A stretch of DNA of 64,000 bases from Tubulanus polymorphus (GCF_964204645.1 NC_134031.1:14433807-14497806); one strand, 5' to 3'. Numbered from the stretch's first letter, positions 16,145-63,234 are shown. The notes: a model not told the origin generated them from the sequence alone. Numbers and translations are program-made.

Positions 16145-16582
16145 CCTCTCCCTCTCCCTCTCCCTCTCCCTCTCCCTCTCCCTCTCCCTCTCCCTCTCCC
16201 TCTCCCTCTCCCTCTCCCTCTCCCTCTCCCTCTCCCTCTCCCTCTCCCTCTCCCTCTCCCTCTCCCTCTCCCTCTCCCTCTCCCTCTCCCTCTCCCTCTC
16301 CCTCTCCCTCTCCCTCTCCCTCTCCCTCTCCCTCTCCCTCTCCCTCTCCCTCTCCCTCTCCCTCTCCCTCTCCCTCTCCCTCTCCCTCTCCCTCTCCCTC
16401 TCCCTCTCCCTCTCCCTCTCCCTCTCCCTCTCCCTCTCCCTCTCCCTCTCCCTCTCCCTCTCCCTCTCCCTCTCCCTCTCCCTCTCCCTCTCCCTCTCCC
16501 TCTCCCTCTCCCTCTCCCTCTCCCTCTCCCTCTCCCTCTCCCTCTCCCTCTCCCTCTCCCTCTCCCTCTCCCTCTCCCTCTC
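16145..16582. repeat. (CCTCTC)n hexanucleotide microsatellite, about 73 copies
   Basis: Uninterrupted perfect array. Confidence 0.98.
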
Positions 16583-19484: not shown

Positions 19485-22400
19485 CTACAACGAGAAATAT
19501 CATTAGAGAAACTTAAATCAACTTTTTAAACATTAGTGGAAATAAATTCGAAAAAAAAACTTTAGGGTTAAGTTTCGTGAAAAATATCGAAGAGTTCAAA
19601 ACGATGAAGTTTGAAAGTTTGTCTTTGTTGAATGCAGCAATCAAAACAAACAATAATTTGAGTTTATCATTATCTTTATAACTCTACCACCAGTGGGCGT
19701 TCATGATGATAGACTCATTATTAATTATTGGCAATGCAAAAATGATATCAAATTAGAAAGGTAAATTAGAAAGCTTGACGAGGATTTAGCAATAAGCTTA
19801 TTCGAATAACATGTAGAAAGAATTGGGTCTCTTTTTTGCCTGTAAATGAATAACCAAACCTTCAGTTAGATATAAATGATAGATTATGTTCCGCTTGAAA
19901 TGTTTAAGGTGATGAATAATACTTTATTTTTAGTTGCAACCTACTAAATGAAATGCTTGAAAATATTTTGAATTTGAGCTCTTTTGGCAATCTAGATTTT
20001 CTATAAAAAAAATCCTACAATCAACTTTGCAAAATTCATAAAAAAGGATCAGACATATGGGTCCCAATAATTATTATGTTGTAAATAGATGTATGTATTT
20101 TCAAAAACTTTGTTATCTATAAATTAATACGAAACTATGTACCAGTCGCCTTGGAGAAGAAATTGGTCTTGAAATTTGGTGTGGTAAACAATCATATTGT
20201 ATGAATTAATGCAACGGCTGGAAACTGCAGTGAAAATATTTATAAGGGGCTGGGCAAACTGAGGCAGGCAAAATTTCAGCCAATCAGTAAGCAGGAATTC
20301 TTATTATTGACTCTCGCACTGCATCAAAACAATTTCACAGTCAGTAATTGCAGCTATTCGGTGAGGAGGTCGCGTCCAACACAGCACCTTTAATATTTTG
20401 TTCAACACCGGCAGGCTGCTCTTTGCACTCTGCGGAGTACTCCGAACACTGTGCGGAACAAAGAAATACACTAGAACAAGTCACGTGACTCTGCCATACG
20501 TTACTCCGCTACTCCACAAAAGTGGGGCAGCATTTGTATTTGTCTAACATGAAAATAGCGTAATGCGCGTATGCAGAAAACTCGACGGTCAACCACTCGC
20601 GTGCGCTTTGCGCTTGACTCAACCGGTGGCCACGCGCGTTTCTATGAAGATATTTTTATGAAAATAGGATCAACAAAATTCTCAGATAAAACTCTATCTT
20701 CAATCTACATTATATCTCAAAACATGAAAAAGTTACAGTCAGTAACACAAAATTACCAATCTTTTTGAGGCGCCTTCGGTGAAGTATATTTTTTAAACTG
20801 TAACTGTATCCGATTGTTGCAGCCGAGAAAAATTAAATAAACACCATCAGAAAATAGAAATTGTCACCTTTCTAACGATAAAAGACTTAAACTTTTGAAG
20901 CAAAAGGGTGATGGGCTATAATGAATCGCGCTAAAGGTTTTACTTTAAAAAATGTGAAATCTGTCCAACAATGCGGACCCCGCGAGACGCCTCAAAATGG
21001 CGCCTGGAAACTGGAAACTTACCTATACCTGGCAAGTTCTTGGCCAAAGGAAATCACCCGTTGTTTCCACGGGTATTATTCCTAGTATTTTATTGAGATA
21101 AATTTATATTTTCTGTTGATTGTAGATATCGTATATTTCATAGTCTCCCTCCATGTACCATAGAAATGGTTGGAGTGTAAACAAAATCCTAATCATTACT
21201 TCCGCGGACATGTTGCCTTTTAAATAGAAATCTAAAGCGAAAAGCACTTAGGTAATTTCCACCAAATAAGAAAAACACCAGTGCAATACTTTCCCACTAG
21301 GGGGCTTTCACGGCACGAAACTAATTCCATAATAACACGTGCCAATCGTGAAAAAAACGTTTTTTTTTAATAAAAACCTTTTCCTGTTAATGCACAACGG
21401 CAGTTCGGTCACTTTCCCGTATGAGGGACGCATGAGGGGGAGTCTTTGATACTTAACCTTGAGCGCTGATTGCTCTGTGCGCACTCACCAATCATTACCG
21501 TAATCATTCACAAACACTAAACGGAGTTTCCAACGATATGATGAATGTCATGTTGTCACGTCAGAGAGTAAATAAAAAATTATTTTCTTTCTTTTAGAAA
21601 AAAAATAACACCCTGCTCATTATTCATGAAGAACTTTCACTTGGCGAACAGAAGAAAATGATTAGGTGGTCGACACATTACGCGGCGTTTGGGAAGGTAT
21701 CAGGAATCGTGGCTGGTTTGAATAATTCAACATCGGTTACTTCTTGATGGCCGATTGAGGATATTACTAATTGTATTCGAGCCTCATTGCCTCCACAACT
21801 GACTGTGCTACACAGCCACTAGATTTGTACAAGGTCAATTTCTAAAAGAAATATCCTGCGACACATTGAGCTATTATAGAGTTCTATAAGCACGATATTG
21901 TACGAAAAATGTTTTGAATGGAAAGCTGGACGTAAAGCTTTTACTTTCATGGCACCAACTTTATGGAATGTCTTACCACTGGAAATTCGTGAAAGTCCAA
22001 CTGTCTCATGTTTTAAATCACGTTTAAAAACTTTTTATTTTAGAAATCTGTACAATTAGTGTTTTAATCTGCTTCTGTCTTATCTGTTTTAATAAAGTGA
22101 AGTGCAATGAGTATGTTTTATAGAAATGCACTTTATAAGTAAATAAATTATCATTATTATTATTATTATCATTATTATTATTTTTATTGTTATTGTTATT
22201 GTTATCTTTATCGTTATCGTTATCGTTATCGTTATCGTTATCGTTATCGTTATCGTCATCGTCATCGTCATCATCATCATCATCATCATCATCATTATCA
22301 TCATCATCATTATCATCATCATCATTATCATTATCATTATTATCATTTATTATTAAAGTAAAACGACCAATAACCAATAATTCACAACCAATCATTGTCC

Positions 22401-41994: not shown

Positions 41995-42248
41995 ACTTAG
42001 GCTGGTCTTAAGTTGTTAAATTGGCTATAGGAACAAATTAGCTTTGACCGGTCTAAGGTTTTTAGATTTGGCTACAAAACCAAAGTAAGCTTAGACTGGT
42101 CTGAAGTTGTTAAATTAGCTATAGAAACAAAATACGGGCTTAGGCTGGTCTGAAGTTGTTAGATTGGCTAAAAAACCATAGTGAGTTGAGCCTGTTTTCA
42201 GGTTGTTAGATTGGTTATAGAGATAAAATGAGGTTTAACTGGTCTTGA
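41995..42248. repeat. About 48-bp diverged tandem repeat (TTAGGCTGGTCTTAAGTTGTTAGATTGGCTATAG..), about 5 units
   Basis: Directly visible. Related sequence at 18430-18530 (inverted) and 57040-57090. Confidence 0.75.
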
Positions 42249-42462: not shown

Positions 42463-45400
42463 ATGAATTTGTTATCCGTTGTGGTTGTAGCTGTATCAAT
42501 TCTAGCAGGATTTGCTTCGTGTAAGTAGAAATTTTGAAATTTCGATCTTGAATATAATTCGGATGAATGCAATTTTTCGAAAGAAAATACATACCCTTGG
42601 CTCTCATTATGTCATTAGATGCAGTTCTTTTTGATCAAATCATTACTATACATCCACGCTATCTTGTAGTAGTAGAATTCATTGAATAAGATGTATTTTG
42701 TATGAACTAGTATATATGCACCTTCATGGTCTGAAGCAAGTCATCCTCTATGAGCAGGGATTCGAACCTGATGGTATAAAATGGCTAGACTCAGCCGCGA
42801 TACGGTACCCTGTAACACTAGACCGGGTGCGCGGGTTTGCCACAAGAAAGCGGAGCTAATCAGAGTGAATGTCTTTTGTATTATCACTGAGGCAAATTTC
42901 ATTGAAGAACTATAAATCGGAAAGCCCGGCCTATAATAAAACGGGACTTCTGATTAGCTTATAATGACATTATTTAAGCTGCGCACCTGATCTTGTGTGG
43001 CAGGGTTTCGTACCGTAGCAATCTCGATGCCAAAAAGTTCGAATCCCTGCCGAGGGAGGATGGAAGCAAATAAATTGAATGGAGATGTTTTTAAAAAAAT
43101 GTGCTTTAAAATAAACAAATAACAATTAACCTATTCCAGGTGAGAAATTCGCTCAGCCATTAGACATCGTGGTGATAATTGCCGACAATGAATTGACCGG
43201 ACCTAAGGGTATCGATCAAGCGAAAACGTTCCTAAAAGGTCTCCTCAATTCGGTGAAAATATCTCAATCGGCCGTCAGAATATTCTCAGTACTGATGAAG
43301 AAGAGTATGGCCACCATGAGGCCCGAATACGGAGCGCGTAAGTACCACATGAAAGAGTTTATTCTATGTTTTGTTACTATTTCATATGTTTTTCTTTAAA
43401 TCTTAGAATAAGGATTGATCGTTTTATTTATTTGATTGGTAGATTTCGTTTGATTTTCTTTCTTTGATTTGGCGTCCCTTGCAACTCGCCACACCTGCCA
43501 GGATCCAAACTTGATTTTGAAATCGGAAATCGAAGTACAGATATAGTTATGTGATCGGCGGTCGGGTTTACAGATTTGATTTTGTTTAAATCGAAGTCCA
43601 TGTAAAAAAATTCGATTCCGGTTCATTCAAACGATCTTCCAACCAGCTTGATCCGACTGATGGGGGTCAACTCTTATTCACAACTACGAGTAATTGCTCG
43701 TAGCTCACAACTATATGGATTTTGAATTTTCATTTGGATTGAGGGTTTACATTTGAAGTTTCCGAAACATTTGAAATGAACAAATTATAATTCTTGGACA
43801 CAAACTTAACAAGCGTCTGTAAAACTGGATCCTTTTTACGTCAAGCGTCGCCTTACTCGGACAAACAAACTGGGACTGGCAAAATTGGTCCACGGTAGGC
43901 TTAGCCCGAGTTCAGCATTCGATACGTTTCAGAAAAATGATTTCGTTTTTCAGAAATCTGGGTTAGGCGAGGTGTATCATTCTTATCTCTCATTTCAATC
44001 AATGCCATTTCATTTTGTGTCCACCCTGAAATACCACCACATGAGTTATAATTCCTTCGAAAAAATTCCTAATGGTCAATCGTCTAAGAAATATATTCTC
44101 TTTCCTCAGAGGACAGCTTGGCTGAACAGTATGCTAAACTATACGTGGCTGACGTTGATAAATTTGTGGTCTATGAAAAGTCGCCGACCAGTTTCGATCA
44201 CATGACTCAATTTCTGGGAATGTTACTGCTGCAACATTTCATGGAACGGAACACGCCAGCTCCTAAACTCCTGATCATCGTAGGTAAGTACGTGCACGAC
44301 CTTAATAGGGAATGTCGATTTCGACTACTACCCGCAGTTGGATTCGCCCACATGCCGAGAAGAGTTTTAGCTGAGCCGTACGCGTTTACCTGGTGTAAAA
44401 TCAATACACTCTAAGACGGTAGTGATGTGTAGATTATACCAGGGACTCTAAAACGACAGTCCATGAGTACGCGTACTGTGTAGATTATACCAGCGACTCT
44501 AAAACGACAGTCCACGAGTATATGTAATGATTCTACAAGAATAAGAAATTACGAACATAGAGCAGCTTTATCGAGCAGATAAATGAACAGGGAATAATAG
44601 TTAATAGGGAAATAACTGTATTTAAAGTGGAGGCGCTGTTTCTTCAGCAACTTCACCTATTTACCTGATGAACCTACTATAAATACTCTAATTAGCGAGT
44701 GTTTCCTAAATGAAATCAGTTAACCTCCATCGCAGCATAACTTGTTAAAACGTTTATCATTTTGACACCAGGTTAGCAGGTCATCTTCTTTACAACTGTG
44801 GTACTCTGCTTCTCCTTATATACACCGTTTTTCCTCAATTAACCAGTCAAATCTGGTGATTTATAATAAAATCAGTTAACGAATGAATCAGACCACGCCT
44901 ATACTCCCTAAACGCACAATCGCTGTATTTTGACAGGATTTATACGGAAAAACATTTTATTTCCCTGATTCCCAATTCGGTACTCGGTCACTTAGCGCGA
45001 AATATCAATTTCCGTCAGTATTTCATTTTTAAGTATTCTACGTAATTTCTGTTTTTGCGCAGGTAATCCGGGAACTTCAGAAGAGAAATCCTGGAATTCC
45101 CTGATGATTGAACTATGGAAGAACTACATCACTAAATATTTCACGACTGTTTTGATACCGTGCGCCCGAACAAAACCGGACCCCGCGTTTATCAGCAGTT
45201 TGGGAAAAATTACGACGCTTTCTGCTGGTGCGACTTTCGCTAACATTGCGCCGTCAATTCCGAAAACAGCCGGGGCTGCTTTACCAGACGGATGGTTCAT
45301 TCCTGACAAATATTTTCCCTTACAAAGTATGTAGGCCCCACTGATATTATGAAATCCTATTCTAAGAACAAAAAGAGCTCTGAAATGTCGCCTTGAGCTG

Positions 45401-48400
45401 ATAACAGTTTATTCAACAGTATATATTAGCTATCTTCAGGAATATCAGAGGGATGTAGTCGAAACGCTGAATAAACTTTTAGCTCGGTGAATCATTTTGG
45501 AATTATTTCCACTAATGAATAAACGAGTGTTTCGTCAATGGTAATTAAATTAAGTCATGGTTTTTACAAAAAGCCGATATTCCTGGCACGAGGCTCTCTA
45601 CCGCACTATAAGGGCTCAATGGAATGGGATCGGTGACTATGTGGGAGGGGTTGTTAAACCTGGGGGAGGATATCTTAACGGATTGAGTGAGATAATTTTT
45701 CTGTATTGTTTTTTGTTTTATTTTTTATTTTCAGTGTTCGCATTCACAGATAAACGTGAGTTCAAGGGATATTATATTTCAACATTCAGAAATATTTCTA
45801 TGAAAAGACTGTAGTGAACTGATGTAAATCTCAGTATAGTTAACGAATAAAAACCCGACAGTAGATTAGGAAACAAACTGTTTCTACAAATCTACCGTGG
45901 GTTTTTATTCGATATCTATGAAACTTGTCATTTACAGCGGAAAACATTTTTCTTTCTTGAAAACACGCTGATCTTGGCTGTTATTTTCCTATCTGCAATA
46001 ATGTGTAGCTGGTTCATTCTCTATCATTCTCATTTCTGATATTATCGATGATATCTCGATATATTACAATATCATCATTTTTTCAGTGATTCCGGAGAAA
46101 TATCGTAAAGTTCCCGATAAATATTTGAAACCGATTCCGATACGAGTGACGCAATCGAGTTCAACGAGCATGACGTCACAAATTGACGTGTCGAAAAAAG
46201 GTAGGAAGAAAAATGATATCTAAATTCTTGATTTTCTGAATTGAGAATTTTGGTCGAAAGACAAAATACATAAAATCCGCGCACACTAAAAACAAAATGA
46301 ATCTCAAATTTAGTTTGTTTGACGTATCGACTATCCGAATAGTCGTCATCGGGAATACAGCATTTCTAAGTTAGGATTTGACTTAAATAGTGTAAAATGA
46401 ACTAATTTCAACCCGGAGTTACCCCCCATTTTATTCATACATGCTCTAACTCACTGGGTCCTAAAGACGACTATAAGGATATAATTTTAACGCCAAACGC
46501 TCGACTTGTGAGAGTGTGAAATGTCGTGTCTTTCTGATTTTAATTTTCGATGAATGAAAATTAGCTTTTAATGGTGTCTATAGGGGTTTTAAACTTGTCA
46601 TCTGTTCTCCACGTCAGAGAGTGTACGGCCATTCTACCATAAGCTCGAGGAAGCATTTCGGGCCCATTTCTTTCTCAATGTGAGAATTTAATACGATCGT
46701 CACAACTCGACCCAGGGTGGCTCATCAAAGGTTAATGAGCACAACCATACTTTATCTCTTTCTCTCCATTGCAGTTAAAAAACGTTTCGATATGTTGATA
46801 TTTTTGGACCGATCCGAATTCACCGGCGAAAAAAAATTCAATGAAATCGTCGCAACGATTAAACAACTCATTAAAACCTACTGGATCTCGCCGTCACACG
46901 CCAGATTCTGGATATTCGATTTGAAAGGTCACCAGATGATTATCTATCCCCTCGGGTATTACGGACCGAACGCCGACAGCACTGAACTACAAAGCGCCTG
47001 GACCGCAACTTACCTATCGTTCGTCGACAATATTAAATACAGTAAAGGTGTCGCTACCGATATGTATATCATGTCGCAGTTCATGTTCTGGGTCGTCAGT
47101 AACGTTCAGGGTAGGTAGAATTTCTCCCTGGTCGAATATATACTACTTAGAGTCTTATTCGTATTTACTGCTCATCGATAGAAATTTAATCCTGCACTGA
47201 CAATCTATACAAAAATAATTCATAAGTCGATTAGACCGAGATCATCGGTGACAGGTTATTGGTTGGAGTGAAATTAAAGATAAACAAATCTTGTCATATA
47301 AAATGAATACGGCCACTTCCATAAAATCCCCTAACATTGATTCTTTAGATTTGACTATGTTGTGATTACGTCGTAGGGAGATTTTATAGAGGTGGCCATA
47401 CTTTCGGCAGAACAGTGGATACATTAATGTGATGACGATGTTTCTATGGGATTTAGTTTATAACTGTCGAATAGTTGAACGTCCCAATCGTTGATGTCGT
47501 CATCACATAGGGCGAGCCGATAAAACCCGTTAGATTTTGGCGTGGTCGCCTCGTGGTCTACTGTCCTAGTTGTCCGCTAGATTGAGATCTAGTCGAAGGT
47601 AGTTGCTCAAACTGCACCGGCACGTTTTGGTGCCGCCCTACATATAGTCAAACACTGATAGGTGGTGATGGTTAAGAGCAGTGCCAGAAGTTACGCGCGC
47701 TCATCGGGGATCAAATCCGGGTCTCATACGTGGAAAGCAAGCGTGGTAGCCAGTAGATCAATAGAACTAGTCCACTTGGCCAGTGGTTATAAGGCTTGTC
47801 CTATATGTGTAACTTTGATACTTCCCCAAGCCGCAAAAGTTTTTCTTTTAAATTCACCAGCGAAAAGGTGGAGGTTAATTCAGTATTGTCACAGCTAGCT
47901 ACAAGAAACTTACTTTTTTAACCTCGATTTTGTTCATAATTTCTCTTTAAGGGGGAATATGGCGGCCGCAGTCGACCACACCGACACCGCGTGTCGTACT
48001 CATGATGGGATCGTTCAAACCGAAAACCGACGCAAAGAACAAGGAAATATCGGCTATATTTAGCGGACTGAGGCCGTACGTGTTTTTCACTCTGGTACCG
48101 ATCGCTCAAACTTCAGCAGATCAGAAATTCTATACTCTACTAGCATCGGCTAATCTCGGTAAACCAGGGATGGACGTAACGGCAATTATGACCTTCATCG
48201 GAACTATGATCACGAAAGCACCCAGTACGTACAATACGGCCTATTCGAGACCCTTCCGAACGTTTTTCCAAAAATTCCAATTTTTAGAAAAATGGCTGCC
48301 ACCAAATACTTAAAGATGTCTAACAATCAATATTGTTTTCATGTGAATAAAAATCTCTTTTCAAAATGGCGGCCTGCGTGAATTCTACATCATATATTGT

Positions 48401-51400
48401 CTGAACAACCAGGCTAACATTCGAAACCTCTAGAGTAGAAACTCCTATATTCTAAAAAATGGCAAGCTGCACGATAATTGTTAAAATGATATCGTTGACA
48501 TTTCCAAACATTTCCAGCTCTTTTACTTCAAACTGTAAGAATGACAATTTGTAAAAAAAAATGGTGACGTGCATGACTATCATAATGACATCATCGAAAT
48601 TTCTCCCAAAACCAATTTTTGGTATTGGAATTAGATTTTGAATATTTTTCGATTCAGATATTCATAGACAAAATTTATTCTTTTAAATTTTCTAGAAACA
48701 CCAAAAACGATTCCGACGAATGGAATTTTGTTTCCGAACCAAAATAAGTACATCACAATGCAAAGTAAGTTTTCATTCATTTATTTCTTTATTTTCTCCA
48801 TTAATTTGTACATGTGAGTTTAGAACATTCGTTCAATAACCTATCTATATTTTCAGTAAACGTTATGCAAATTCTTCGTAAGTACGAAATGATTGTTTAA
48901 TCATACTTGCATATTCGTTTTTTTTCAATCTAATTAATAATTTCTATTAGAAGAAAAATCATCGGTCATCGAGTTTTTTAAGTCGTTGAAGTATTCCAAA
49001 AATCTTTCAATTCTTTCAAAATAATTTTACCCGTGACTTTGAACTGAATATGTTTTGACATTGGTGTTAAGGTGAAGTGCACAAGAGCATCCAAAGTGCA
49101 TTACCCAGTAAAGGCGCTCAAGTGGCACCAACTCAGACCACACAAGTAACATTGAAAGGTAATACATGTATTTTAATTCGAACATCTGTTTTATCTGTTG
49201 AAGGCATGATACTAGAATTTTTATTGAAAGCAAGCACCCACCAGTAACACAAGGTTTTGGTTAAGATAAACTCTGAGGATACGATCAGATCATTCCCAAT
49301 GTTTGTCTAGGTCCCGATTCCGAATGTTCGGTTAAAATTTGAAATTATAATCGTTTCCAGTTTTCCAGTTCTCTAGAGTCACATTTTCACCGAGAATTCT
49401 GGAACTGAATCCTCAAGTATAGAATATGATAGAAATGGTATATATATATATTCTATATATATTCTAAGAAGCCTTACTCAGTTGTGCTAAATATGAACTC
49501 AAATCGATACCTTTGTTTTCTTCCCTGTGAGAAAATGAATTTGTGATAGAAATGAACGTTAGAAGAATCTTTTCCAGCTGATACAATATGCTTTATTCTT
49601 TAGAGTATATTCGCTCTCGTCTCCCGGTGTCTCTCCCTCTAGATTTCGGGGACCCTCCTTAGATAGCCACTCGCGAATCTACCACGTCGCGCAAGCGTTA
49701 ACTATGCCTAAATTCCCATTTGTGGTAACAGCAACTGTTTGAATTCGCCCTTTTCCAAGAATAATTTAATCAATTCAGTTTTCTGAGAAAGCGATAATGG
49801 TCCCTGGTAGCAACTGTAACTAATGTGAAAACCACATGCTGATCTGATATTAAAACAATGATTTGTGAAATTGACGACTCCAAAACTGAAAAGCCGAATT
49901 AGTTCGGTTCAAACATAATTTAGTGATGATACCAGGAACTGTGAAATTGTTCTAAATGATCTATAGCTGCGGTTACGCATGAATTATTGAATGAACATAA
50001 TTAAATTGTTTTCCTAATATCTGCCGCAATCTTTCAAAAATATACAAATGTTATTTTACTCGCTTGATAGAGGCACCCGAAACCAATGCGTTTTTCATTT
50101 CCGCAATCTCTGCAATCAAATTAGTTTATCCTGCATTACAGAAATCACGTCGCAGCTGATGTTCTTCATAGACAATTCACCAGAAACCAGTCCAGAAAAA
50201 GTGACCGAAATAATCAAAATCATCACGACTTTCATTCAAACTTATCGAATCGGACCGAAATTCGCAACTGTTTACATTTTCTACGTCGTCGATAAAACTC
50301 CGAAAGTAATTAAAGTAACGCAACAACAAAACATCGACTCGTATGTGAAAGAAATTAAAGCTATTCCTACAAAGAGTGACACACCAGATATTACATTCAT
50401 ATTGATGCGGTAAGAATATTGTCTCTATACTTATCCACAAGCTCTCGGGGAACAGGGTTCAAACGCCAATCCTTTTATACCAGAACAGTTAGGGGTACGC
50501 TCTACATGTAGACTGTGTCGGCGGAAAGAATCGAAGCCTTTTTGGGACTGCTCTCCCACCACAGCTGAGAGGAGAGAGGGTTCACTAATTATAAAAAAAA
50601 CTTTTTTGACGCCGTAAAAACCGTTACAATAATGTTAATGTACATTGATACCTAGTATGCGTTATGTGAGGGGTTCTGTGTGAGTCGATGTGCACTACCT
50701 CATCGATATTGGCATTTCCAAAATAACAACTACAATTGTGAATTTTGGCATTGATTTTGTAACTAAATATATTTCATAACTGTTATTTTATTTTCGATAA
50801 ATTATGATGAACATCTTTGAGAGGATGTGCACTACGTCATCAATATATTAGACTGGTTGCCAGTCAATTCAATTCAATTATTGATATATTCAAATCTAAC
50901 TTTAATGATACTTGACATTACATGTGTATATGATTGATATCATCGTCTTTATTGCTTATAGTATTAAGCAATATGTGTGTTGTTTTTCAAGGCGTCAATA
51001 AACTTTCAAGGTAGTTTTCTTGTGTTGTAAATTTGTAGATACTTTGTGCAAACGTTCCTGTCTGAAGTGAAACTAGAACCGACGATACCAAAGATTATAA
51101 CTCTATACGGTTCCGTCGCTCCGAAATCTCCGAAAGCGCAAACCGAATTCAAAACCATCATCTTACAAATGAAAACCTTTTTCTCCGTATCGGTCGTTCC
51201 CGTCGCCAAGACGACGAATATCGATTTCCTGAAAACCGTCGTCGGGCAGACTTTCGTGGTTACCATGCCTACGACGTTCGACGTAAAACAGATAGTCGTT
51301 AAAATGACGACGATTGTTCAGAAATTCACCGATGTTCAAAAAGGTAAAGATTTCCCACCAAAAAAGGCTCTGAAAAAAGGGTTATCACCTTAATTTCCAT

Positions 51401-54400
51401 TAATTTCAACAATAATTTTTATTAGGGATTTTGATAGATAGCAAATTATTTATTTTCTATAAGCTACTCCACTGATGCTGCCAAATCCAACCAAAGTGAA
51501 AGAGATCGTAAAAGATATCGGTATTGTATAAACTTGTTTTCCTATGACTTCGAATCAATGACTTAAAATATTTAGACATCACCTATGAATTTATGTTAAT
51601 ACAGATACCATCGCAAAACCAACCGGTTCCTCAGAAACCCCGGCCGTAAAAACAACCTCTCAGCCAGGTCAGGAACAAGCCACACCGGCTACTGGGAACG
51701 GAGGCACCACAACGCCTACTGGGAACGGAGGTACCACAACGCCTACTGGGAACGGAGGTACCACAACGCCTACTGGGAACGGAGGTAACACAACGCCTAG
51801 TGGGAACGGAGGTACCACAACGCCTACTGGGAACGGAGGTACCACAAAAGTCCCTGGTCAGGCGAAACCTAGTCAGGTGAACCCAAGTCAGGTAAAACCA
51901 GGTAAGTTAAAAGTTAAATGATTCCAAGTGACAGAATTCACATTTTTTATGGAAACCATTTTTTCCAAATTACAGAAATCACGTCGCAGCTGATGTTCTT
52001 CATAGACAATTCACCAGAAACCAGTCCAGAAAAAGTGACCGAAATTATCAAAATCATCACGACTTTCATTCAAACTTATCGAATCGGACCGAAATTCGCA
52101 ACTGTTTACATTTTCTACGTCGTCGATAAAACTCCGAAAGTAATTAAAGTAACGCAGCAACAAAATATCGACTCGTATGTGAAAGAAATTAAAGCTATTC
52201 CTACAAAGAGTGACACACCAGATATTACATTCATACTGATGCGGTAAGAATATTGTCTGTAGTGAACGCGTTGCGAATGAATAGTTTGGATCCCAATTCG
52301 TGAAAACATTATTTTCATTTGACCCTTAAATCGAATCATTCAACATCTGATGTTGTAATTAGGGAATTCACAGAGGCGTCTATATCTCTTCAAACCACGT
52401 TTGTGTGGTTTTATTATCATTTTATTTTGACTTGTAGATACTTTGTGCAAACGTTCCTGTCTGAAGTGAAACTAGAACCGACGATACCAAAGATTATAAC
52501 TCTATACGGTTCCGTCGCTCCGAAATCTCCGAAAGCGCAAACCGAATTCAAAACCATCATCTTACAAATGAAAACCTTTTTCTCCGTATCGGTCGTTCCC
52601 GTCGCCAAGACGACGAATATCGATTTCCTGAAAACCGTCGTCGGGCAGACTTTCGTGGTTACCATGCCTACGACGTTCGACGTAAAACAGATAGTCGTTA
52701 AAATGACGAAGATTGTTCAGGAATTCACCGACGTTCAAAAAAGTAAAGATTTCCCAAAAATAAACAAAGGGTTTTCAATTCAATTTAAGTGTATATGTTT
52801 TTTATTTACTCAATATCATTCTGTCTTCTGCTTTTAAGAAACTCCACTGGTGCTACCAACTCCAGACAAAGTAAAAGCGATCATAAAAAACATAGGTATT
52901 TTATAAATCAGTAGATTTTCGAGGATTTATGGAGAAGTTGGCCGAGATTTGTTGGTCTATTTCTCATCACAAAACATGTCTTATAACAAAGAACGATGTT
53001 TCATTCTAGATGCTGTTGCAAAACCGATCAAACCTACAAGTTCTGAGGAAAAACCAGAGAAGGAGAAGCCAGAAAGTTCTGAGGAAAAATCTGGAAGTTC
53101 TGAGGAAAAACCAGAGAAGGCGAAGCCAGTCAAGGAAAAACCAAACAAGGAGAAGCCGGAAAGTTCTGAGGAAAAACCAGGGAAAGTGAAGCCAGAAAAG
53201 GGAAAACCTAACAAGGAGAAGCCGGAGAGTTCTGAGGAAAAACCTGGAAGTTCTGAGGAAAAACCAGGGGAAGAGAAGCCAGTCAAGGGAAAACCTAACA
53301 AGGAGAAGCCGGAAAGTTCCGAGGAAAAACCTGGAAGTTCTGAGGAAAAACCAGGGGAAGAGAAGCCAGTCAAGGGAAAACCTAACAAGGAGAAGCCAGA
53401 AAGTTCCGAGGAAAAACCTGGAAGTTCTGAGGAAAAACCAGGGGAAGAGAAGCCAGTCAAGGGAAAACCTAACAAGGAGAAGCCGGAAAGTTCTGAGGAA
53501 AAACCTGGAAGTTCTGAAGAAAAACCAGGGGAAGAGAAGCCAGTCAAGGGAAAACCTAACAAGGAGAAGCCAGAAAGTTCCGAGGAAAAACCTGGAAGTT
53601 CTGAGGAAAAACCAGAGAAGGAGAAGCCAGTCAAGGGAAAACCAAACAAGGAGAAGCCGGAAAGTTCTGAGGAAAAACCTGGAAGTTCTGAGAATAAACC
53701 AGAGAAGGAGAAGCCAGTCAAGGAAAAACCAAACAAGGAGAAGCCGGAAAGTTCTGAGGAAAAACCTGGAAGTTCTGAGGAAAAACCAGGGGAAGAGAAG
53801 CCAGTCAAGGGAAAACCTAACAAGGAGAAGCCAGAAAGTTCCGAGGAAAAACCTGGAAGTTCTGAGGATAAACCAGAGAAGGAGAAGCCAGTCAAGGAAA
53901 AACCAAACAAGGAGAAGCCGGAAAGTTCTGAGGAAAAACCTGGAAGTTCTGAGGAAAAACCAGAGGAGAAGCCAGTCAAGGGAAAACCAAACAAGGAGAA
54001 GCCGGAAAGTTCTGAGGAAAAACCTGGAAGTTCTGAGGAAAAGACAACACAAAGAAAACCTGGCCAAGTGAAGCCGGCAGGTCAACAGGGAATCAAAACA
54101 CCAGAAACTCCGGGTACATCAGCACAAACAAAACCAACCGCGCCTGAAGGTGAAACCAGTGATGTTCCGACTGAAACTGATAAAGGTAACAATAGAAGTG
54201 AAACGAATACGATCTCGTTGTATTCATCCTTGAGCTAAATCTTAAAACATAAAAACAATTCTGCGAACAAGATACACATATTGCAAAATTCGGTGCATTA
54301 TTTTCATCTGTTCACAGAGAAACGACCACACGACTTTTTCATTTTCCTCGACGGTTCAAATCGCGTCTCAAAACCGGCTTTCGAAACTTCTCGCACGTTC

Positions 54401-57400
54401 ATACTCGAGATCCTGAAGAGGTAAAAGTTCGTTCGTTCGTTCGTTCGTTCGTTCGTTCGTTCGTTCGTTCGTTCGTTCGTTCGTTCGTTCGTTCATTCAT
54501 TTTAAAATTTAAAATAGACTGGATCCAGTTCCATAGTTTTGAGTAACAGTGAACCCAGTTACTGTTCAACTCTTGTAAAATTTGATTCACAACTGTTGAA
54601 CTGGATCCAGTTGAACGATCACTCTTCTAACACAGTGATACAGACGAAACTTAAGTCTTAAGTCTAAGTCATGACTGTGCAACTTATCCCTGGGTTAACT
54701 GTTTGAGACTGTTTGTTGAATTACAGGTATGAAATCGGACCGTCACAGACGACTCTATCAATTGTTTTTATCGGAGGCAAAAAAGTCGTCGCTATTGACG
54801 TCGATGGTTCGAAACCGATTACCGAATACACCACACAGATAACACAACTACAATACAGTCCACAGGAACCAAATATCAAAACCGCCGTGGAGCTGATGAG
54901 CGTGGTAAGTGAGGAGAATCGAACCACCAGGTGTCGTCACAAACAATAAGTAAAATACATTCGAGCGAGAATGTGAGTGTGTGTGGTGTGAGGAATTTTA
55001 GGCTAGTACAGTTTGTCCGGGTTACCAAATCAAGATATTCTAACAAAATTTACCTATCAAATAAATAACAGGGGCAATCCCTATTTTAAGATCAGAAACC
55101 TCGGTCTCGTTTCTACGCGAATAGAACGTCTCACGTTAAACGGCTTGAAAATAGATAGTTCCCTCCCGTAGTGTATTGTCGATAGTATGTAAATGTATAT
55201 ATTAGGCCTATAGATAACTTTGTTATGTTTCAAATTGTTTTAATTTCTCTCCTGTCTCCTGTCTATATAGTTGTTAACAAATGATGAAACTATGATGTTA
55301 TGAACGTCAAATTTCGTATTTTGAACAACAATTTGTAACCCGGTGGAACATTGGTGGCGATTGTTACTTATAGAAGTGGACAATGTTAACCGATGAATAA
55401 TATCAGCATACCTGAGTTGAAAGTTCGAACCCCTATTTTACCGAATTTCGTGAAATTCACGGATTTTATATTTCTGCTGAAGAACTGTTTGCTTAATTTT
55501 TTTCATATAATTTCAGTTCATTCTAAACCAAAGAACAACAGGGGACATATTCACAAATCTACTCGTTATGGGTTCATTGCGAACCACAGTTACAAGCGAA
55601 ATCACGAAACTGAAAACGTTTTTCGCCAAAATATCACCCATCATGGCGATTGCGGTTATGGACGATGGAGCGACGACAAAAGATACTGATTTCCTGAAAA
55701 CTGTTTTAGTCCCATCAGCGACCGTACAGTACATCAACTTCATCGCTAACAAACCGGCCACCTATTATCTGAATCAGTACATTACTGTTACCACAAAAGT
55801 TTCCTTCAGCAGTGAGTCCAACAAAATCCAATTTAAAAATATCTTATTCATTAAATTAAGAATTGTCTTTTTAAACGAAATTTTCATAGAAAAATTTCAA
55901 ATCATTTTCCTTTCAATTTATTTCATATTGCCCTATTCCGAAATAAGAAAAAAACATCTTAAAATCGATCCTTCATATTTTCGAAGTAAACAAAATACAT
56001 CTGCATATGATTTATTGATAATGCGATGTTTTTTATTTTATTTATTAAAACCTAATACGTATATTTCTGTTCTCATTAGCAAACAGATGTTGATTCATAT
56101 TGCAGAAATGTCGATCCAAACTGTGAAAACCAGTCAACTTGCTGTATTCAAATCCTTCTATACTTTAAACGGTAATTTGTACTGATAATGTATCCTATAA
56201 TTCATCTTTGTAAAAATGTTGAAAATTTGACTAAAAATTTGAAAAAAAAGTTTGCTGTTTATTCGAATTCAACTCAGATCTATCAAACAGGGTTAAGTTG
56301 TTCAAAAGTTAGTTGGAGTTGAAACTGTCGATAGATGTCATGATAATGATGCAATTCTTATTGTCACTATGTCAAATATCCATCAGTTTCAACTCTAAGT
56401 TTTCAGCAACTGGCCCCGAATTGATGAAAATATCTTTTGCACAATTTGCTCATTAACGACATTAAAATGAGAAATGCTTTTTTGGATTTATCCACCAGCT
56501 ATAATCTCAACAACCCCCCAATCCTGAAATTTCAAATTTCAACTCATCCGATAAAGCATGGCTGTAATGAAACAACTAGATACACGTTTATGGTTCCATA
56601 AACAATTCGATTTTCAATTAAGGACTTAGATCATGAAATTCCACTTGGTGAATAGAAATGGCGGGTTTTTTCAAAGTTCCGAATCATATTTGATAATACA
56701 TATTTCTATATTTCAGATATAAGGGGTTTGATTCCTTCGCAGTTTTTAGGTAAATTTTCTCGCAGCGGATTTACATTTTTATTTATTCACTCTTTTCTAC
56801 AAATCGTTAATTCTTTCACAATTATTTTTTTTTCAGTGACGGATGCCGGACAAAAGAAAGGTAACAATTCACATTCTGGGACCTTTTCGTGCAAATGTAT
56901 TAAGATAACATTGATGTCTTTGAGTGAAAAATATGGAAATATATTCATATTCAAATCCTCATTCATAAGTATGGAACTGGTCCAGGACCCAGATGCACAG
57001 TCGTGACTTAAGTCCAAAGTTTTATTAAATTTTAAGTCTGATCTTGAGTTCTTAGATTGGCTATAGGACTAAGTTGGTGGTCTAAGCCATGACCATATGC
57101 AACCGGCCCCTGAAGACAAACATTTTTACGAATTTTCGCGAAGATTTTTGAATCTCATTTTGTTCACAGCTCCGACTGAGAAACTCGATATGATCTTCAT
57201 ACTGGACGCGTCTAAAGACACCCCTAAAGCTGAGTTCGATAAAACGAAAACTCTAATTCTGGAGATTGTTGATAAATTCCCGGTGGATTCCGATAGCGGA
57301 AGTCGGTTACACATTATCTACGGAGACGGACACTCGGTGAAACTGGTCGGAATTACGTCATCATCTAACCCAGTTCTTGTTAAACGTATGGCTAAAATCA

Positions 57401-60400
57401 TACTTGATAAGGTATACATATCATTTGTATAATATTTAGCTTTGGTCGTCGGAAATTTTCAAATAATAATCCAAAGATTTTCGAATTACTACCGTCTAGA
57501 TTTTTTTAAAAATTTCTCTGAACTTTGTCTGTACGGAAATCACTCGATTAAGTTGGATCTTTTTGGACAGGACAGAATATGTTCGCCTTAGGCGGGAAAC
57601 AGTAGACTCTACTTTCGTTTGACTTTTAAAGGAATAGAAATCAAACTCAAAGGTCCTGAACTATTTCGCCAAAGTCTGAGTTTTGTTACGGAATCGATTT
57701 GAGTCGTGTCCGTAGAATCAAAGTTCTAGGTATACAACAGACTCATGACCGATGGCGGGCTTCAAATTTTCTGTCTATTCTTCAATTCTCCTTCAATTTC
57801 TATCATATATATGTTTGACAGCCCATATAAGATGCCATCATCATATTCAACTCAAATTATTTGTATTTCTATGCAAATTAGATGATCTACCTAGGAGGAG
57901 ATGGACCAATCAACATCCCGTCGGTGATGCTTCTATTGACCAATGCACTTTCCAGTCCTAACTTCCTGCGAGCAACGACACCTAGAGTTGTAATGTTTAG
58001 CGGAAAATTCAACGTCAAAAAAGGCACCGAACCTGTGGTAAATATCTATCAGTTACAAAATTGGACTGGACCGTTTGCTCAAAAATTGGTTCAAGTCTGC
58101 TATAGTCCAAAATGGTCCATGACTATGGAACCAGTCCCCAGTGGATAGTTGATAGTGATATTTGAAACCTAATGGTTACCACTGATATACTGGACCAAGT
58201 TCCACAGTTGTGAGTTAAGACTTAATACCGAGTTAACTCATTGTAAATGAACTAAATATAACTCGGAGTTAACGCTAACTCATAACCACTGTGGAACATG
58301 GGACCTGACGGTTTACTCTAATCAATTATGGAGAAAGTGAGCTTTTGATTCATTCAATTTTAACTGAGAGAGCCGAATCTTGACCAACAACTGTGGAACT
58401 AGATCTAAAACCGTCATTTTAATACTAACATATCTCCCCAAATATCTACCCGTAAATAGCCCTACGCATATGCTGTTTTCGATTGGTCTCTACCAATTCT
58501 GGAATCTGGCGTGCTCATTTCGACCAGATTACAGTCTACCTATTCCGGAATAGTATTTATCTGTAAACCTGATAGAAGCGGCCGGTAGAGAGTTTGTAAT
58601 TTGTAAACCTGATAGGAGCGGCCGGTAGAGAGTTTGTAATCCGGAATTCCTACGTTCAATCGAAACTTGCCTAAATACGTGGTAATTAAATTCATTTTGC
58701 TTTCAAATTTTGATATTGATTTCAGATGAAGAAGATTTTCATGGATATGAAATCCATGTTTACATTCGTGTTTCTGGAGAAAGGCACTCAACTGGAAACG
58801 CAAGTGATAAAACAAATACATCCAGCCGGCTTGTTCGTGTTCTCGGGAACTTTACAAAGTGCCGCCTTCATGAAGTTCTTCATCTCGAAAATGACCACAA
58901 TCAAAACAAGTAAATAAATGAATTTAAAAAACCAAAGACACGGACAAGATCGAACCACTGAAGGGGAGGGAATTAGATGTGACTCGTTGCAGAAACAATC
59001 AATGAATTTTAACTCAACAGATCCATAAACTAGGCCTACAGCTATGAAACAGGGGCGACGTTGACTTAATTCCACAGTTGAGAATTGAGTTCACATTCGA
59101 AACATCAGAAATAAACTTATAATCTTAACCGTAGAATGAAACGTAAGCAAAAACTGTAAAACAGGGTCCGTCCTGGTGTTTACTATTGATTTCACATCTA
59201 GCCACCGACCGCTGCAGATCTGGGGCTCAAATACTGTTTAAAATCTACATCAGTTTTAATTCCCGTTGATTTAACTGTTCTATTCTATTGCTGTCTATTT
59301 CAGTTCATTACACAGTTATCTCCAAGACAGTCGTCAAATCATTGTCTGAAGTAATGACAGGTACAGTTATCTCTCAGTACGATCGCACGTGGATTCAATA
59401 AATATTGACTACAACCACTATGTCGCATGTTCCCTCGATAGCTCAGTTGGTAGAGCGGAGGACTGTAGAATGGTGACAAGTAGATATCCTTAGGTCGCTG
59501 GTTCAAATCCGGCTCGAGGGAAAGATATTTTATTGGTTTTTTTGTTTGAATTTTTTGGGAAATCAAAATGTCGCTTTCGGTAACTAATCGTAATTTCACT
59601 AAATTATTAAAGTCTTTGAGAATGAGATGTTCTTCTTAAGGTAACTAATCGTAATTTTACCATTTACCATTTGAAGCCATCGAGAATGGGAAAGTCGTCA
59701 TTAGTAATTAATCATAACATACTGAATCGTTGATTTCATTGAGAAACTAATCATAACTTTACTGAATCGTTGATTTCATTGAGAAACTAATCGTAATTTG
59801 ACTGAATCGTTGAAGTCATTGAGAAACAAATCGAAATTTTACTGAATCCTTGAAGTCATTGAGAATGGTAAAGTCGTCTTAAAAATCATAATTCTACTGA
59901 ATCGTTGAAGTCATTGAGAATGGGTAGGTCGTCATTTGCAACTAAAACACAATTGCTATATATATTTTTAGACGCCATGGAATCGTATACAACGATTCAA
60001 CACTCGAGCGGAACCGTTACGAGCTCAAATGCAAAATGTGCGGCAGGTTTTGTTTCCATTGGTTCCGGAAAATGTAAGAGTAAAACAGGAAGTAAGTGAT
60101 ACAAACAGGTCCCGGGGGATCAGTTTGAGGGGTAGATACAAAACGGGAGGGAGTGGGGTTTGCGCATCCCCTCCCCTAAAAATATCTAGTAGCCCTGAAT
60201 TTCACGGGTAAATGAAAAATATCAAATTCATACCTAGAAAAACGAAATCTACCAATCAAATCACTAACAGGGTCAATTCCTATTGTAAGATTAGATTAAA
60301 AGTTGCAGTTTTCAAATGCCATTGAAAAATTTCTGTTTCGGGAAAAAAGTAGCTAAAAGGGCACACAATTTGTGAGCAATAAAAGATAATTGCCTTTCTA

Positions 60401-61478
60401 TACTAGGCTTACAGCAAAATGTGAATGAAAATAGATTCCCGAAAATCAAAAAAGGCAATCTAAGGCACTCTCCTTTGCTCAAAAGGGCACTATTCTAAAA
60501 GAGATATTATTGCTACTCAATACGTTTAATCGGAAAATGGCAAATTTTTCCAAAAATCTAAAAAAGGCACACGCAAATTGAATGTGAAGGCAAATTAAGT
60601 GGCATGATACCAATAAATGGCACACAAATTTAGAGCAAATCTAGAATAAAGTCAGAGAATCTGCCTTGTTGACATCTTCTATCTCGATCAAGCGCTTGGA
60701 AAATGCATTAATATAACATGAAATTTCAAGACCCCAAGACCCCCTTTATATGCTACCACGTCGCTCGCTGGGCATGGATACTGGCCCTTTTCAAAGTTGG
60801 TGCCCTTTTTTTTCACTGTGCTGTAGTCATTGAATCGCCCTGGATCTGCGCCTGTTGCCATTCTTTCAGGATGCCCTTTTACATTATATGATATGACCTA
60901 TTTTGTAGATACACCCCTCTCTGTGTCAGACCCTAGATCCGTCCCTGTGTTGCCAGTCTTACCATTCTAACAATTTAAGAACGATCATCTAAGACAAATC
61001 TTTGACTCCGCCAGGGTTTTGAGTTCGATTCTGAATTACCAAATTTGTTTCAGAAATTTCATGCGCTCAGGGCATGCAATCACGACAGATAGTGAAAGGC
61101 AATTTAAGAATTCTGATGTGCTTCACTACCGGAACTCCGAAAGCAATGCAGGATAAACTATTGAATATGTTACTGGCTAGAATGTCGGCTGTTTCCAGTC
61201 AGACGTTCAGTAGCGGCTCGGCAGGGGGCGTCGTAGTGCAACGCCATTTCAGCAGCAGTAGAACGGTGACCAGTTCAGGCGGTATGATGAGTCACACAGG
61301 GGGCGGTATGATGTCTAGTCACAGCTTCGGAGGAAAGATATCGGGATCTAGTACCATGGGACATCTCGGGGCCAGCCACTCCTCACAGACGATCGTACGG
61401 GGAGGACTGTCATCGCATACATTCATGAGCCGCAGCAGTAGCATCAGCCACAGCAGCAGCAGTGGACGAAAAAAATAA
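42463..61478 (+). CDS. Large secreted multi-vWA-domain protein with low-complexity repeats (about 2015 aa, 30 coding exons)
   Basis: GT-AG exons, all phase-consistent, total 6048 nt: 42463-42520 (signal peptide MNLLSVVVVAVSILAGFAS), 43140-43337, 44110-44283, 45063-45326, 45735-45755, 46087-46104, 46775-47110, 47952-48224, 48696-48764, 48857-48877, 50142-50409, 51039-51343, 51464-51520, 51605-51901, 51976-52243, 52438-52742, 52839-52895, 53010-54185, 54318-54420, 54727-54904, 55517-55811, 56106-56171, 56717-56749, 56837-56860, 57170-57411, 57882-58037, 58726-58909, 59304-59360, 59972-60091, 61054-61478. Six vWA-type starts: LDIVVIIADN, FDMLIFLDRS, QLMFFIDNS (twice), HDFFIFLDGS, LDMIFILDAS. AATAAA at 61551. 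The microexons are the least certain part. Confidence 0.82.
42740..42835 (-). mobile_element. tRNA-derived SINE head
   Basis: Minus strand reads GCGCACCCGGTCTAGTGTTACAGGGT...GGTTCGAATCCCTGC...GAGGATG (A and B boxes). Homolog at 42981-43062. Confidence 0.6.
42981..43062 (+). mobile_element. tRNA-derived SINE head (same family as 42740-42835, opposite orientation)
   Basis: GCGCACCTGATCTTGTGTGGCAGGGT...GTTCGAATCCCTGC...GAGGATG. Confidence 0.6.
51691..51846 (+). repeat. 27-bp coding repeat (TGNGGTTTP), about 6 units, in the vWA gene
   Basis: ACTGGGAACGGAGGTACCACAACGCCT tandem units inside exon 51605-51901. Confidence 0.92.
53010..54185 (+). CDS. Repeat exon of the vWA gene: Lys/Glu/Pro/Ser polyampholyte with an 87-bp (29-aa) unit, about 11 copies
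   Basis: ORF 52949-54238, acceptor at 53008-53009, donor at 54186. Unit EEKPVKGKPNKEKPESSEEKPGSSEEKPG. Confidence 0.88.
54427..54494. repeat. (GTTC)n microsatellite just after a splice donor
   Basis: About 17 perfect copies. Confidence 0.95.
54521..54608. mobile_element. Short palindromic MITE family (GGATCCAGTTCCACAGTT termini), representative copy
   Basis: GGATCCAGTTCCATAGTT ... AACTGTTGAACTGGATCC. Related copies near 650-695, 32745-32850, 56980-57110, 58190-58285, 58385-58405 and 61590-61770. Confidence 0.65.
59432..59521 (+). tRNA. trnY-GTA: tRNA-Tyr(GTA) with a 17-nt intron (59469-59485)
   Basis: CCCTCGATAGCTCAGTTGGTAGAGCGGAGGACTGTAG[intron]ATCCTTAGGTCGCTGGTTCAAATCCGGCTCGAGGGA. Canonical eukaryotic tRNA-Tyr, 73 nt after splicing, with a paired acceptor stem and downstream T-run terminator. 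Confidence 0.97.
59715..59925. repeat. About 40-bp minisatellite (ACTGAATCGTTGA..TCATTGAGAAACTAATC..)
   Basis: About 5 units; degenerate copies start near 59575. Confidence 0.85.
60127..60947 (+). mobile_element. Composite non-autonomous TIR-type element(s) containing copy 2 of the 7-kb repeat
   Basis: 60354-60812 is homologous to 7071-7562. Inner right terminus CTGGATCTGCGCCTG (60840-60854); outer right terminus TAGATCCGTCCCTG (to 60947). Confidence 0.7.
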
Positions 61479-63234
61479 TTCGAAGTAATTTGACATTTCT
61501 AAGAAACTGTAACCATAAGTAGCATTATGTCATTTAAACAATAATTGATGAATAAATCGATGACTTTAATCAAGCATGACATTCAGAATCCTGTTCCACA
61601 GTTATGAGTTAGAGTAAACTCTGAACTCAGGATCCAGTTCAACAGTTGTGAGTTATAGTTAACTCTGAAATCAGGATCCAGTTCCACAGTTGTAATTTTC
61701 AGATGACCCTCTGAGTAAAAATGTGTTCATTTTCAATGAGTAACTCTTGAGGGTCAACTCATAACTGTCCTTGACAATAGCTTAAATTGCTATCGCTTTT
61801 TCTGGTATCAGCTCCACGAGTCATCGAAATTAAACCCCAGCTTTGTATTCATCAGATATTCTGTTCTTATCAATTGTATTCGTTTCGAAAATTTTTACAG
61901 GTTGAAAATGAAACCAACGATAATCAAGATCTATCGCTTTAGATGAATTAAATCAGTCGAGTCTTCAATTTAAAAAAAACGTCTCGCTTTCAAATGTCAA
62001 TAATCAATTCAATTCGAAAATAAAGCTTTGCACGCAGTATATATATACGCATCTATATTCATAGTCCCGTTGAGTCGTAGATGCTCAGCTTTTTTATGTC
62101 ACTTATAGTTCCGTTCAGTAGGACTCATACACTACTCATTGTAGGCAAACTTGGTACCAACTGCAGCATCCCATGACGAAGAAATCAATATTCATTAGAG
62201 CTGTACCGTCGATGTCACTCGACTATACTTTGAATACCAGAATCATACCCTCATCTGGATAATTTGCGTTTTGAAATGTGCTTTCCTTTCACCTAATCAA
62301 CATGCGGGACAATCAACTTACACGACATCTACATCAACATCTACCCGAGAAAAAAAATTATCATAAATTTTAATCGGACTACTTACACGTGGAAAACGAT
62401 TTAAAAAAATAAGAATATAGAAAACATCTTCAACCTTGCGATATAGTTATTTCCAAAATCTCGATATATACAATTAGGCAGCCGACAAAATGAACCCCAA
62501 TCAGTCGCTTTCCGGTTACGGCTGGTTGCTCGATTGTTTGACTGAACCGGGAACGAAAATTTGATTATGTACTTCGATTAAAACAAGAAATTCTGTAATC
62601 TTGACCGCCGATCACACAACTATATCCGTACTTCAATTTCTGATTTCAAAATCAAACCCCCTGTTTCGCTCCCGGCAGGTGCGGAAGGTTTGTAAGGGAC
62701 ACTGACTCAAAACAAAAATCAAACGAAATCTACCGATCGAATAACCACGTCAATCCCTGTATCAAATTTCTAAAAAAGTTTTTAAGAAAACATTGAAAAA
62801 ACATTGTAATCAGTCGAAACTTTCAAATCTCCAAATACTCCGTTTGCTCCGTTAACAATAACTCACTGGCTCTCAATCTCATCTGCGACGTTCAGTGGTC
62901 ATCTCTTTAGTCAGTTTTCGTTTTTGACGCGTATCAACTCTGACTGAAGAGGTGATGAGCTGCGAGAAGGGAGTGGTTATGAGAGGAAATTTTAAAGCCC
63001 TTACAAGGAGGAACCGTGTCGCTGCCGTTCTGGTAAATTATAGCGAAACTTTAATTGGTCTTGGCGTCATGTGATGGAGGCTACAGTGGAACGGTATATA
63101 CGAATCATGTTCAAACAATTATTTCCACTGAAATTGACAAGCGAACATTTTTTCATTCTCCGGTAGAATTATAATTCGAATCACATTGACTAATCTGCGC
63201 TCGTATTGTAGGTGTCACATAAAACGCGAGCAAT

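Follow-up and report, generated by a model that had tools for sequence, protein, structure and literature searches.

A well-supported gene model for a predicted secreted six-vWA protein with repetitive spacers in the ribbon worm Tubulanus polymorphus

Does the plus strand of a 64,000-nt stretch of the Tubulanus polymorphus genome (GCF_964204645.1 NC_134031.1:14433807-14497806; the whole stretch is hereafter called the window, and positions are counted from its first nucleotide) carry, between 42463 and 61478, a single gene, and what kind of secreted protein would such a gene encode? A preliminary description of this DNA had proposed one protein of six vWA domains, spliced from 30 exons, as a candidate glue, tube or mucus material. 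The window is AT-rich DNA of animal type with short exons. We traced 20 exons with GT-AG borders in it, using splice consensus, phase and the open frame as guides, and together they form one continuous reading of 1,874 codons followed by a stop codon. The result is a well-supported model of one intact gene for a large, predicted secreted multi-vWA protein with low-complexity blocks. All the modules listed in the preliminary description were present on the plus strand and in the order given there. Three lines of evidence support the model: a colinear paralog, the constraint seen in an internal duplicate, and profile and fold matches. The exons were joined only for frame bookkeeping at the junctions, and the searches were made exon by exon.

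Each vWA-type domain is spread over two or three exons. The boundaries between modules are all in phase 1, and the phases inside the domains are 1-2/2-1 in vWA3 and vWA4, 1-2/2-0/0-1 in vWA5 and 1-0/0-0/0-1 in vWA6. Since the domains all meet in this phase, the extra small linker exons of the preliminary description are not needed for the frame. Its single spliced frame was retained, and its count of 30 exons (29 junctions) was reduced to the 20-21 that can be supported, namely the minimal chain of 20 and a probable linker of 69 nt (48696-48764, phase 1-1), a candidate exon that preserves the frame and is conserved in the paralog. We considered the alternative that there is no single functional gene here but either several smaller genes or one that is unexpressed or decaying, in which case the joined reading would merely reflect how the model was built. 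The joined model was built from genomic sequence alone, several linkers are unsettled, and either of two duplicated cassettes described below could be dropped with the frame intact. On the other hand, all 20 exons are open and bordered by GT-AG sites, and their phases match throughout. The internal modules begin at phase-1 acceptors, and no ATG followed by a signal-like hydrophobic stretch was seen there in the lists of open reading frames (ORFs) and the translations of the exons, which were read without a dedicated scan. The paralog keeps the order from signal exon to tail, and in the internal duplicate the exons have changed far less than the introns. We regard this alternative as very improbable.

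The paralog was found by a profile search of the contigs of the same genome, at G000:C5 ~8775483-8784969 on the minus strand, on a different contig from the window gene. Single-exon searches of the genome returned no paralog; the six-exon profile alone recovered this locus, which is the only close relative in the genome. Comparison of the two genes by tblastx gave a colinear chain (summed E 3e-102) in which the individual exons are 35-52% identical. Behind its signal exon, the paralog encodes vWA1 and vWA2, then a linker and a repeat rich in Pro, Ser and Lys, then vWA5 and vWA6, and finally two Cys hairpins and a Ser/Gly/Met tail; it thus has four vWA domains against six in the window gene. 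Both genes have introns at the same places in vWA5 and vWA6. No intron interrupts vWA2 of the paralog or the first two-thirds of its vWA1, and when the corresponding exon pairs of the window gene were laid on these continuous ORFs, exactly one residue was left for the junction codon in both vWA1 and vWA2. Because the intronless ORFs span them with this one junction residue, two splice junctions of the window gene are confirmed.

The N-terminal half of the model is anchored by this comparison. Exon 1 (42463-42520) comprises 58 nt, that is, the ATG and a 19-residue predicted signal peptide (19 codons and 1 nt), and ends in phase 1 at a GTAAGT donor; its mean Kyte-Doolittle (KD) hydropathy is 2.14 over 19 residues, and the signal exon of the paralog has the same length of 58 nt and an identical design. 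Domain vWA1 consists of exon a (43140-43337), which covers beta1-alpha1-beta2 and leaves one residue at its junction to exon b as described above, exon b (44110-44283; splice scores 3.6/7.1, 40% identity to the paralog) and exon c (45063-45326; 52% identity over 40 residues). Domain vWA2 consists of exon a (46775-47110), with the motif DRSEFTG, a Pfam VWA match at E 0.0045 and 39-44% identity to the paralog, and exon b (47952-48224), whose junction to exon a is confirmed by an unbroken 208-residue ORF of the paralog. These five vWA exons are all of phase 1-1. A more distant and larger gene at G000:C1 ~29495000-29514999, also on the minus strand, has at least 10 mostly intronless vWA domains, many of them with D-x-S-x-(F/Y)-T-G, together with a 784-residue Pro/Thr/Lys/Gly repeat exon and Cys modules of the C-P-x-G type.

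The second line of evidence comes from the middle of the gene. Domain vWA3 is encoded by exon a (50142-50409; Pfam VWA E 9e-5) and exon b (51039-51343; recognised by its open frame, its splice sites and its match to the duplicate), and vWA4 by the corresponding exons at 51976-52243 and 52438-52742. The paired exons are 98.5% (a) and 98.7% (b) identical in DNA, whereas the intron sequence just outside the splice sites is only ~80% identical and contains indels. Because the identity falls at the predicted borders, the exons are likely to be real and under constraint. The two exon pairs differ by five synonymous and two replacement codon changes, and exon a alone by four synonymous and no replacement changes. 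Relative to the paralog, there is an insertion in the window gene between vWA2 and vWA5, which consists of two copies of a unit of vWA exon a, vWA exon b and a repeat exon. The repeat exons of the two copies, one Thr-rich (51605-51901) and one K/E/P/S-rich (53010-54185), start alike, and their arrays have diverged since. These data are evidence that vWA3, vWA4 and their spacers arose by a recent internal duplication. An assembly artefact was considered for this duplicate and is unlikely, since the introns differ in length and are ~80% identical. Both resulting cassettes, 50142-51901 (vWA3 and the Thr-rich exon) and 51976-54185 (vWA4 and the K/E/P/S exon), begin and end in phase 1, so that either could be skipped in frame; they are possible alternative cassettes.

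The C-terminal half again follows the paralog. Domain vWA5 is encoded by exons a (54318-54420; motif DGSNR, 46% identity to the paralog), b (54727-54904; 44%) and c (55517-55811), and vWA6 by exons a (57170-57411; motif DASKD, Pfam VWA E 6.5e-4, 42-48%), b (57882-58037; 35%) and c (58726-58909; 44%). Both c exons could be aligned with the other C-terminal half-domains, which are mutually alignable among the vWA exons. The first Cys hairpin exon (59972-60091; C-x2-G-F-x8-C) is 42% identical to its counterpart in the paralog. An earlier donor at 60073 was rejected for this exon, since it creates a stop codon at the junction, whereas the donor at 60091 is stronger and works. The last exon (61054-61478) encodes the second Cys hairpin, a short conserved segment and a Ser/Gly/Met/His tail, shows 29-39% identity to the last exon of the paralog, and closes with the stop codon at 61476-61478. 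An AATAAA, a candidate polyadenylation signal, lies at 61551-61556, ~70 nt past the stop.

The third line of evidence concerns the nature of the repeated domains. Six exons open with the vWA hallmark of a hydrophobic strand, D-x-S and an amphipathic helix. When a profile of the six N-terminal exons was compared with solved structures, four stretches of collagen VI alpha3 were matched at 6.9e-35, and the A1 domain of vWF at 6e-8. A full-domain profile matched collagen VI alpha3 at 1.8e-107, collagen VI alpha2 at 2e-20, mussel PTMP1 at 6.7e-19 and vWF A1 at ~2e-16. A look-up with a protein language model returned vWA clusters only. For fold prediction, the intronless vWA2 of the paralog was aligned with other vWA domains of the genome and modelled as a proxy for the window domains; it is 39% identical to the two vWA2 exons of the window gene. 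The model (predicted local distance difference test, pLDDT, 88.1; predicted template modelling score, pTM, 0.87) shows the Rossmann-like alpha/beta fold expected of a vWA domain of ~190 residues, with strands and helices alternating as in vWA, and all 50 of the best PDB matches listed for it were vWA or integrin I domains, with TM scores of 0.57-0.68. Membership of the six domains in the vWA superfamily is thus supported by profile and predicted fold, not by a Pfam threshold, and the vWA assignment of the preliminary description is borne out to the extent that a 39% identical proxy allows.

The canonical metal ion-dependent adhesion site (MIDAS) motif, D-x-S-x-S, an optional feature that marks the metal-binding subclass of vWA domains, is complete in none of the six domains. 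The residues at this site are A-D-N-E-L in vWA1, D-R-S-E-F in vWA2, D-N-S-P-E in vWA3 and vWA4, D-G-S-N-R in vWA5 and D-A-S-K-D in vWA6. The motif is therefore wholly lost in vWA1, while vWA2 to vWA6 keep D-x-S and have replaced the last Ser by F, E, R or D. The T-D-G that usually follows beta4 is G-S in these domains. Since MIDAS is incomplete in all six domains, ligand binding by them is probably metal-independent. The A1 and A3 domains of vWF work without a MIDAS metal.

The segments between and behind the vWA domains have distinct compositions. The spacer between vWA3 and vWA4 contains (TGNGGTTTP)x6, encoded by 6.2 copies of a 27-nt repeat with 95% matches; the exon consists of 28% Thr, 21% Gly and 13% Pro and is a probable mucin-like, O-glycosylated region. 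The spacer between vWA4 and vWA5 is a polyampholyte of 391 residues encoded by a single exon of 1,176 nt with 10.2 copies of an 87-nt repeat. It is composed of 25% Glu, 24% Lys, 17% Pro and 13% Ser, has a net charge of -7 and no aromatic, His or Cys residue, and is built of approximately twelve 29-residue units with 22 SSEE motifs and 46 S-x-E sites. The spacer of the paralog is a basic Pro/Ser/Lys sequence with a 256-nt period (2.4 copies) and contains neither Glu nor SSEE. Behind vWA6, the two Cys pairs (at 59972-60091 and from 61054 onward) have the form C-(A/P)-x-G-hydrophobic...C, and the C-terminal module contains only these four Cys.

The tail consists of 32% Ser, 17% Gly, 8% His and 7% Met and ends with G-R-K-K. 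The preliminary description had suggested a His-rich block that might serve in curing, a proposal that is weakened by the present comparison: the 92-residue tail contains 7 His, and the paralog tail has a single His, which lies within its final Cys motif. The paralog tail is made of Q-M-M-S-S-G-S-G repeats and ends with C-H-G-G-C-G-K, which includes a C-x-G-G-C motif. Because the paralog tail is rich in Ser, Gly and Met with this one His, the conserved feature of the tail is its Ser/Gly/Met content and not His. In both genes the coding sequence closes with a Gly codon and then codons for basic residues, which give G-R-K-K at 61464-61478 in the window and G-K at the end of the last exon of the paralog. 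Such ends resemble signals for C-terminal trimming or amidation, a likeness that may be a coincidence.

To which family does the protein belong? Pfam searches of the exons returned nothing beyond weak VWA matches. An exhaustive HMMER search with the 111-residue vWA2 exon against 1.84 billion representative proteins gave nothing at E <= 0.001, and two word-based searches, one using the complete vWA2 of the paralog and the other the Cys-containing portion of the last exon, found no outside relative. Each of these searches used a single exon or a restricted length range, and they exclude close relatives in those libraries, not distant or much longer ones. Since no outside homolog turned up within these bounds, a lineage-restricted and undescribed protein is a fair reading.

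The architecture likewise sets the protein apart from well-known vWA families. Neither a collagen family match in Pfam nor a run of four or more Gly-X-Y triplets was found in any exon, in disagreement with collagen VI or XII. For matrilin, there was no EGF match in Pfam, and the C-terminus is a Ser/Gly-rich tail without a heptad coiled coil as judged by eye. The open frames of the gene gave no match to VWD, C8, TIL or CTCK, the modules expected of a gel-forming mucin or vWF. Orthology to PTMP1 is not indicated either, as the profile match is generic, the architecture is different and the search with the vWA2 exon was blank. Among all exons, only exon 1 has a 19-residue hydrophobic run above a KD value of 1.5. 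The scan for hydrophobicity and triplets thus upholds the description of a protein with neither a transmembrane segment nor a collagen Gly-X-Y region, and the protein is not a collagen VI/XII or a matrilin.

Where, then, would such a protein act? In our judgement there is about an even chance that the single gene yields a secreted protein of ~1,900 residues that serves as a modular extracellular cross-linker, most likely in a gland secretion of the body wall, that is, mucus or a secreted tube. Fast evolution, young coding repeats, turnover of the repeats and the lack of outside relatives count for this reading; the fast evolution, the repeat turnover and the absent outside homologs would fit a secreted material better than the core matrix. 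Proteins with vWA domains are enriched in the tube and shell matrices of spiralians and in byssus (PMC8476170, PMC4754843). The role as glue, tube or mucus material itself, as put forward in the preliminary description, is one that we infer only.

Several points weigh against a secreted cross-linker of this kind. The gene model and the role are both drawn from genomic sequence, comparison and predicted fold alone. The Pfam VWA profile matches five of the six start exons at 12.8-23.2 bits (E 9e-5 to 0.14), under the gathering cut-off of 23.8 bits, and even the complete vWA domain of the paralog scores 20.9 bits against PF00092; the C-terminal half-domains, searched by themselves, gave no match in Pfam or PDB. 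The neighbourhood holds a G-protein-coupled receptor (GPCR) gene and remnants of transposons and is no cluster of secretion genes. The phosphorylation, glycosylation and multimerisation that the mechanism below would use are suggested by motifs. Finally, vWA-rich proteins are equally typical of internal matrix.

This last point leads to a second reading, in which the protein belongs to the internal extracellular matrix, either of connective tissue or of basement membrane, and acts like the collagen VI N-domains, matrilins or WARP. It would agree with the A domains of collagen VI and vWF as the best sequence and structure matches, with the absence of a DOPA-type (3,4-dihydroxyphenylalanine-type) Tyr-rich, chitin-binding or VWD module, and with the position of the gene outside any secretion-gene cluster. 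Core matrix proteins, however, are usually kept across phyla, and the searches with single exons or a restricted length range found no relative outside this genome. Moreover, a very young duplication and tandem coding repeats of 94-95% identity would be expected sooner in a mucin, silk or glue, and the protein lacks a collagen helix, an EGF domain and a coiled coil. An internal matrix role is therefore possible but, in our view, rather unlikely.

A third reading takes the protein as a secreted recognition or defence factor, such as an agglutinin, a factor that acts in clotting or in plugging wounds, or a toxin carrier in mucus, whose vWA domains bind foreign or self ligands instead of building a material. 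The use of vWA domains in clotting and complement, the defensive nature of ribbon-worm mucus (PMC9132205, PMC11768458) and the fast-evolving, lineage-restricted character of the family would suit it. In contrast, Pfam detected no effector domain in any exon, be it of a protease, a lectin, a toxin or another kind, and the long repeat spacers and a C-terminus of multimerisation type better suit a structural role. We consider a defence function improbable.

If the protein is a cross-linker of a body-wall secretion, it might work as follows. The predicted signal peptide would route it to secretion. The pair of vWA domains at each end and the two central ones would offer several metal-independent surfaces for partner proteins, a mode of binding that may be likened to that of vWF A1/A3, the collagen VI N-domains and mussel PTMP1. 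The two spacers, expected to be disordered, would form hydrated, extensible segments that separate the two ends, in a manner similar to the PEVK region of titin. The Thr/Pro block is a likely site of O-glycosylation, and the 46 S-x-E sites are, by consensus, putative substrates of Fam20C-type kinases of the secretory pathway. Phosphorylation would make the spacer strongly acidic, and it could then bridge Ca2+ or pair with cationic secreted proteins. The Cys hairpins and the Ser/Gly/Met tail are candidates for multimerisation. Fam20C-type kinase domains above the Pfam cut-off are encoded at two loci of the genome, G000:C4:3713594-3714409 and G000:C7:15287776-15288913. The latter locus is on the same contig as the window gene, ~0.8 Mb away.

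A bolder form of this proposal would have a ribbon-worm-specific family of two genes, built as vWA, spring and vWA, form an elastic cellophane-like tube or a cohesive mucus. The SSEE spacer would act as a phosphorylation switch, packaged near-neutral and then turned strongly acidic, so that it coacervates with Lys-rich secreted proteins, and alternative splicing of both frame-neutral cassettes would serve to tune the material. We regard this extended version as doubtful. No proteome of the secretion of this animal was found in the literature, and to our knowledge the proteins of ribbon-worm tube and mucus are essentially uncharacterised. If gland expression and presence in the secretion hold true, the protein would be among the first molecular components of a ribbon-worm tube or mucus. 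It would also be an independent case of the recruitment of vWA domains into load-bearing secretions, beside byssus, mollusc shell and tubeworm tubes. The combination of metal-independent vWA domains and a PEVK-like spacer rich in phosphorylation sites would represent a natural cross-linker design with a tunable spring.

Other features of the window were recorded in and around the gene. Intron 1 carries an inverted pair (42742-42777 and 43027-43062) of a tRNA-like (GGTTCGAATCC-type) short interspersed element (SINE) fragment; ARAGORN detected no tRNA gene in this SINE-like part of the intron, and a SINE-related element is also present in the intron between vWA1 and vWA2 of the paralog. A (GTTC)x18 microsatellite lies in an intron at 54427-54498, and tandem repeats of 40 and 55 nt lie directly upstream of the first Cys exon, at 59697-59933. 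A tandem repeat of 47/96 nt is located at 42002-42229, ~230 nt upstream of the start codon. A short match of 42046-42081 to a fibrinogen-type gene upstream of the paralog adjoins this repeat and was set aside as probably due to chance. Further upstream on the minus strand, two open frames (18595-19503 and 33756-34133) look like coding parts of a rhodopsin-type GPCR, which may be a peptide receptor; no other gene lies closer on the upstream side, and this one has no connection with secretion. An open frame of 322 residues at 15639-16607, also on the minus strand, consists of a (GE) run of ~70 copies and a non-repetitive C-terminal part. The opposite strand of this stretch reads (SP)n, and it is a high-GC, skewed part of the window.

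Among known systems, the N-terminal array of collagen VI alpha3 and the A1/A3 domains of vWF are the best sequence and fold matches, and they likewise are vWA arrays that bind matrix partners; the window gene differs from them in having no triple helix and no Kunitz, FN3 or VWD/C8/TIL domains. The vestimentiferan tube matrix and the shell proteins of the Pif/BMSP type share with it the combination of secreted vWA domains and low-complexity blocks (PMC8476170; bioRxiv 10.64898/2026.03.09.710468), although in those proteins vWA is paired with LamG or chitin-binding domains, neither of which is found in the window gene. The K/E/P/S unit resembles the PEVK region of titin in its length of ~28-29 residues, in the dominance of Pro, Glu and Lys and in the absence of aromatic residues and Cys. 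A composition of the PEVK type is expected to act as a disordered entropic spring. The likeness is one of composition, with no homology claimed, and the window protein differs from titin in being extracellular, as predicted, and in the SSEE motifs that its spacer adds. Mussel PTMP1 (PDB 4cn8) comes from another phylum, has two vWA domains only, and lacks the spacers, Cys hairpins and Ser/Gly/Met tail, so that the resemblance is a generic vWA likeness and not orthology. It is nevertheless a secreted invertebrate protein with tandem vWA domains in a load-bearing fibre, and the profile match (E 6.7e-19) extends over both of its domains.

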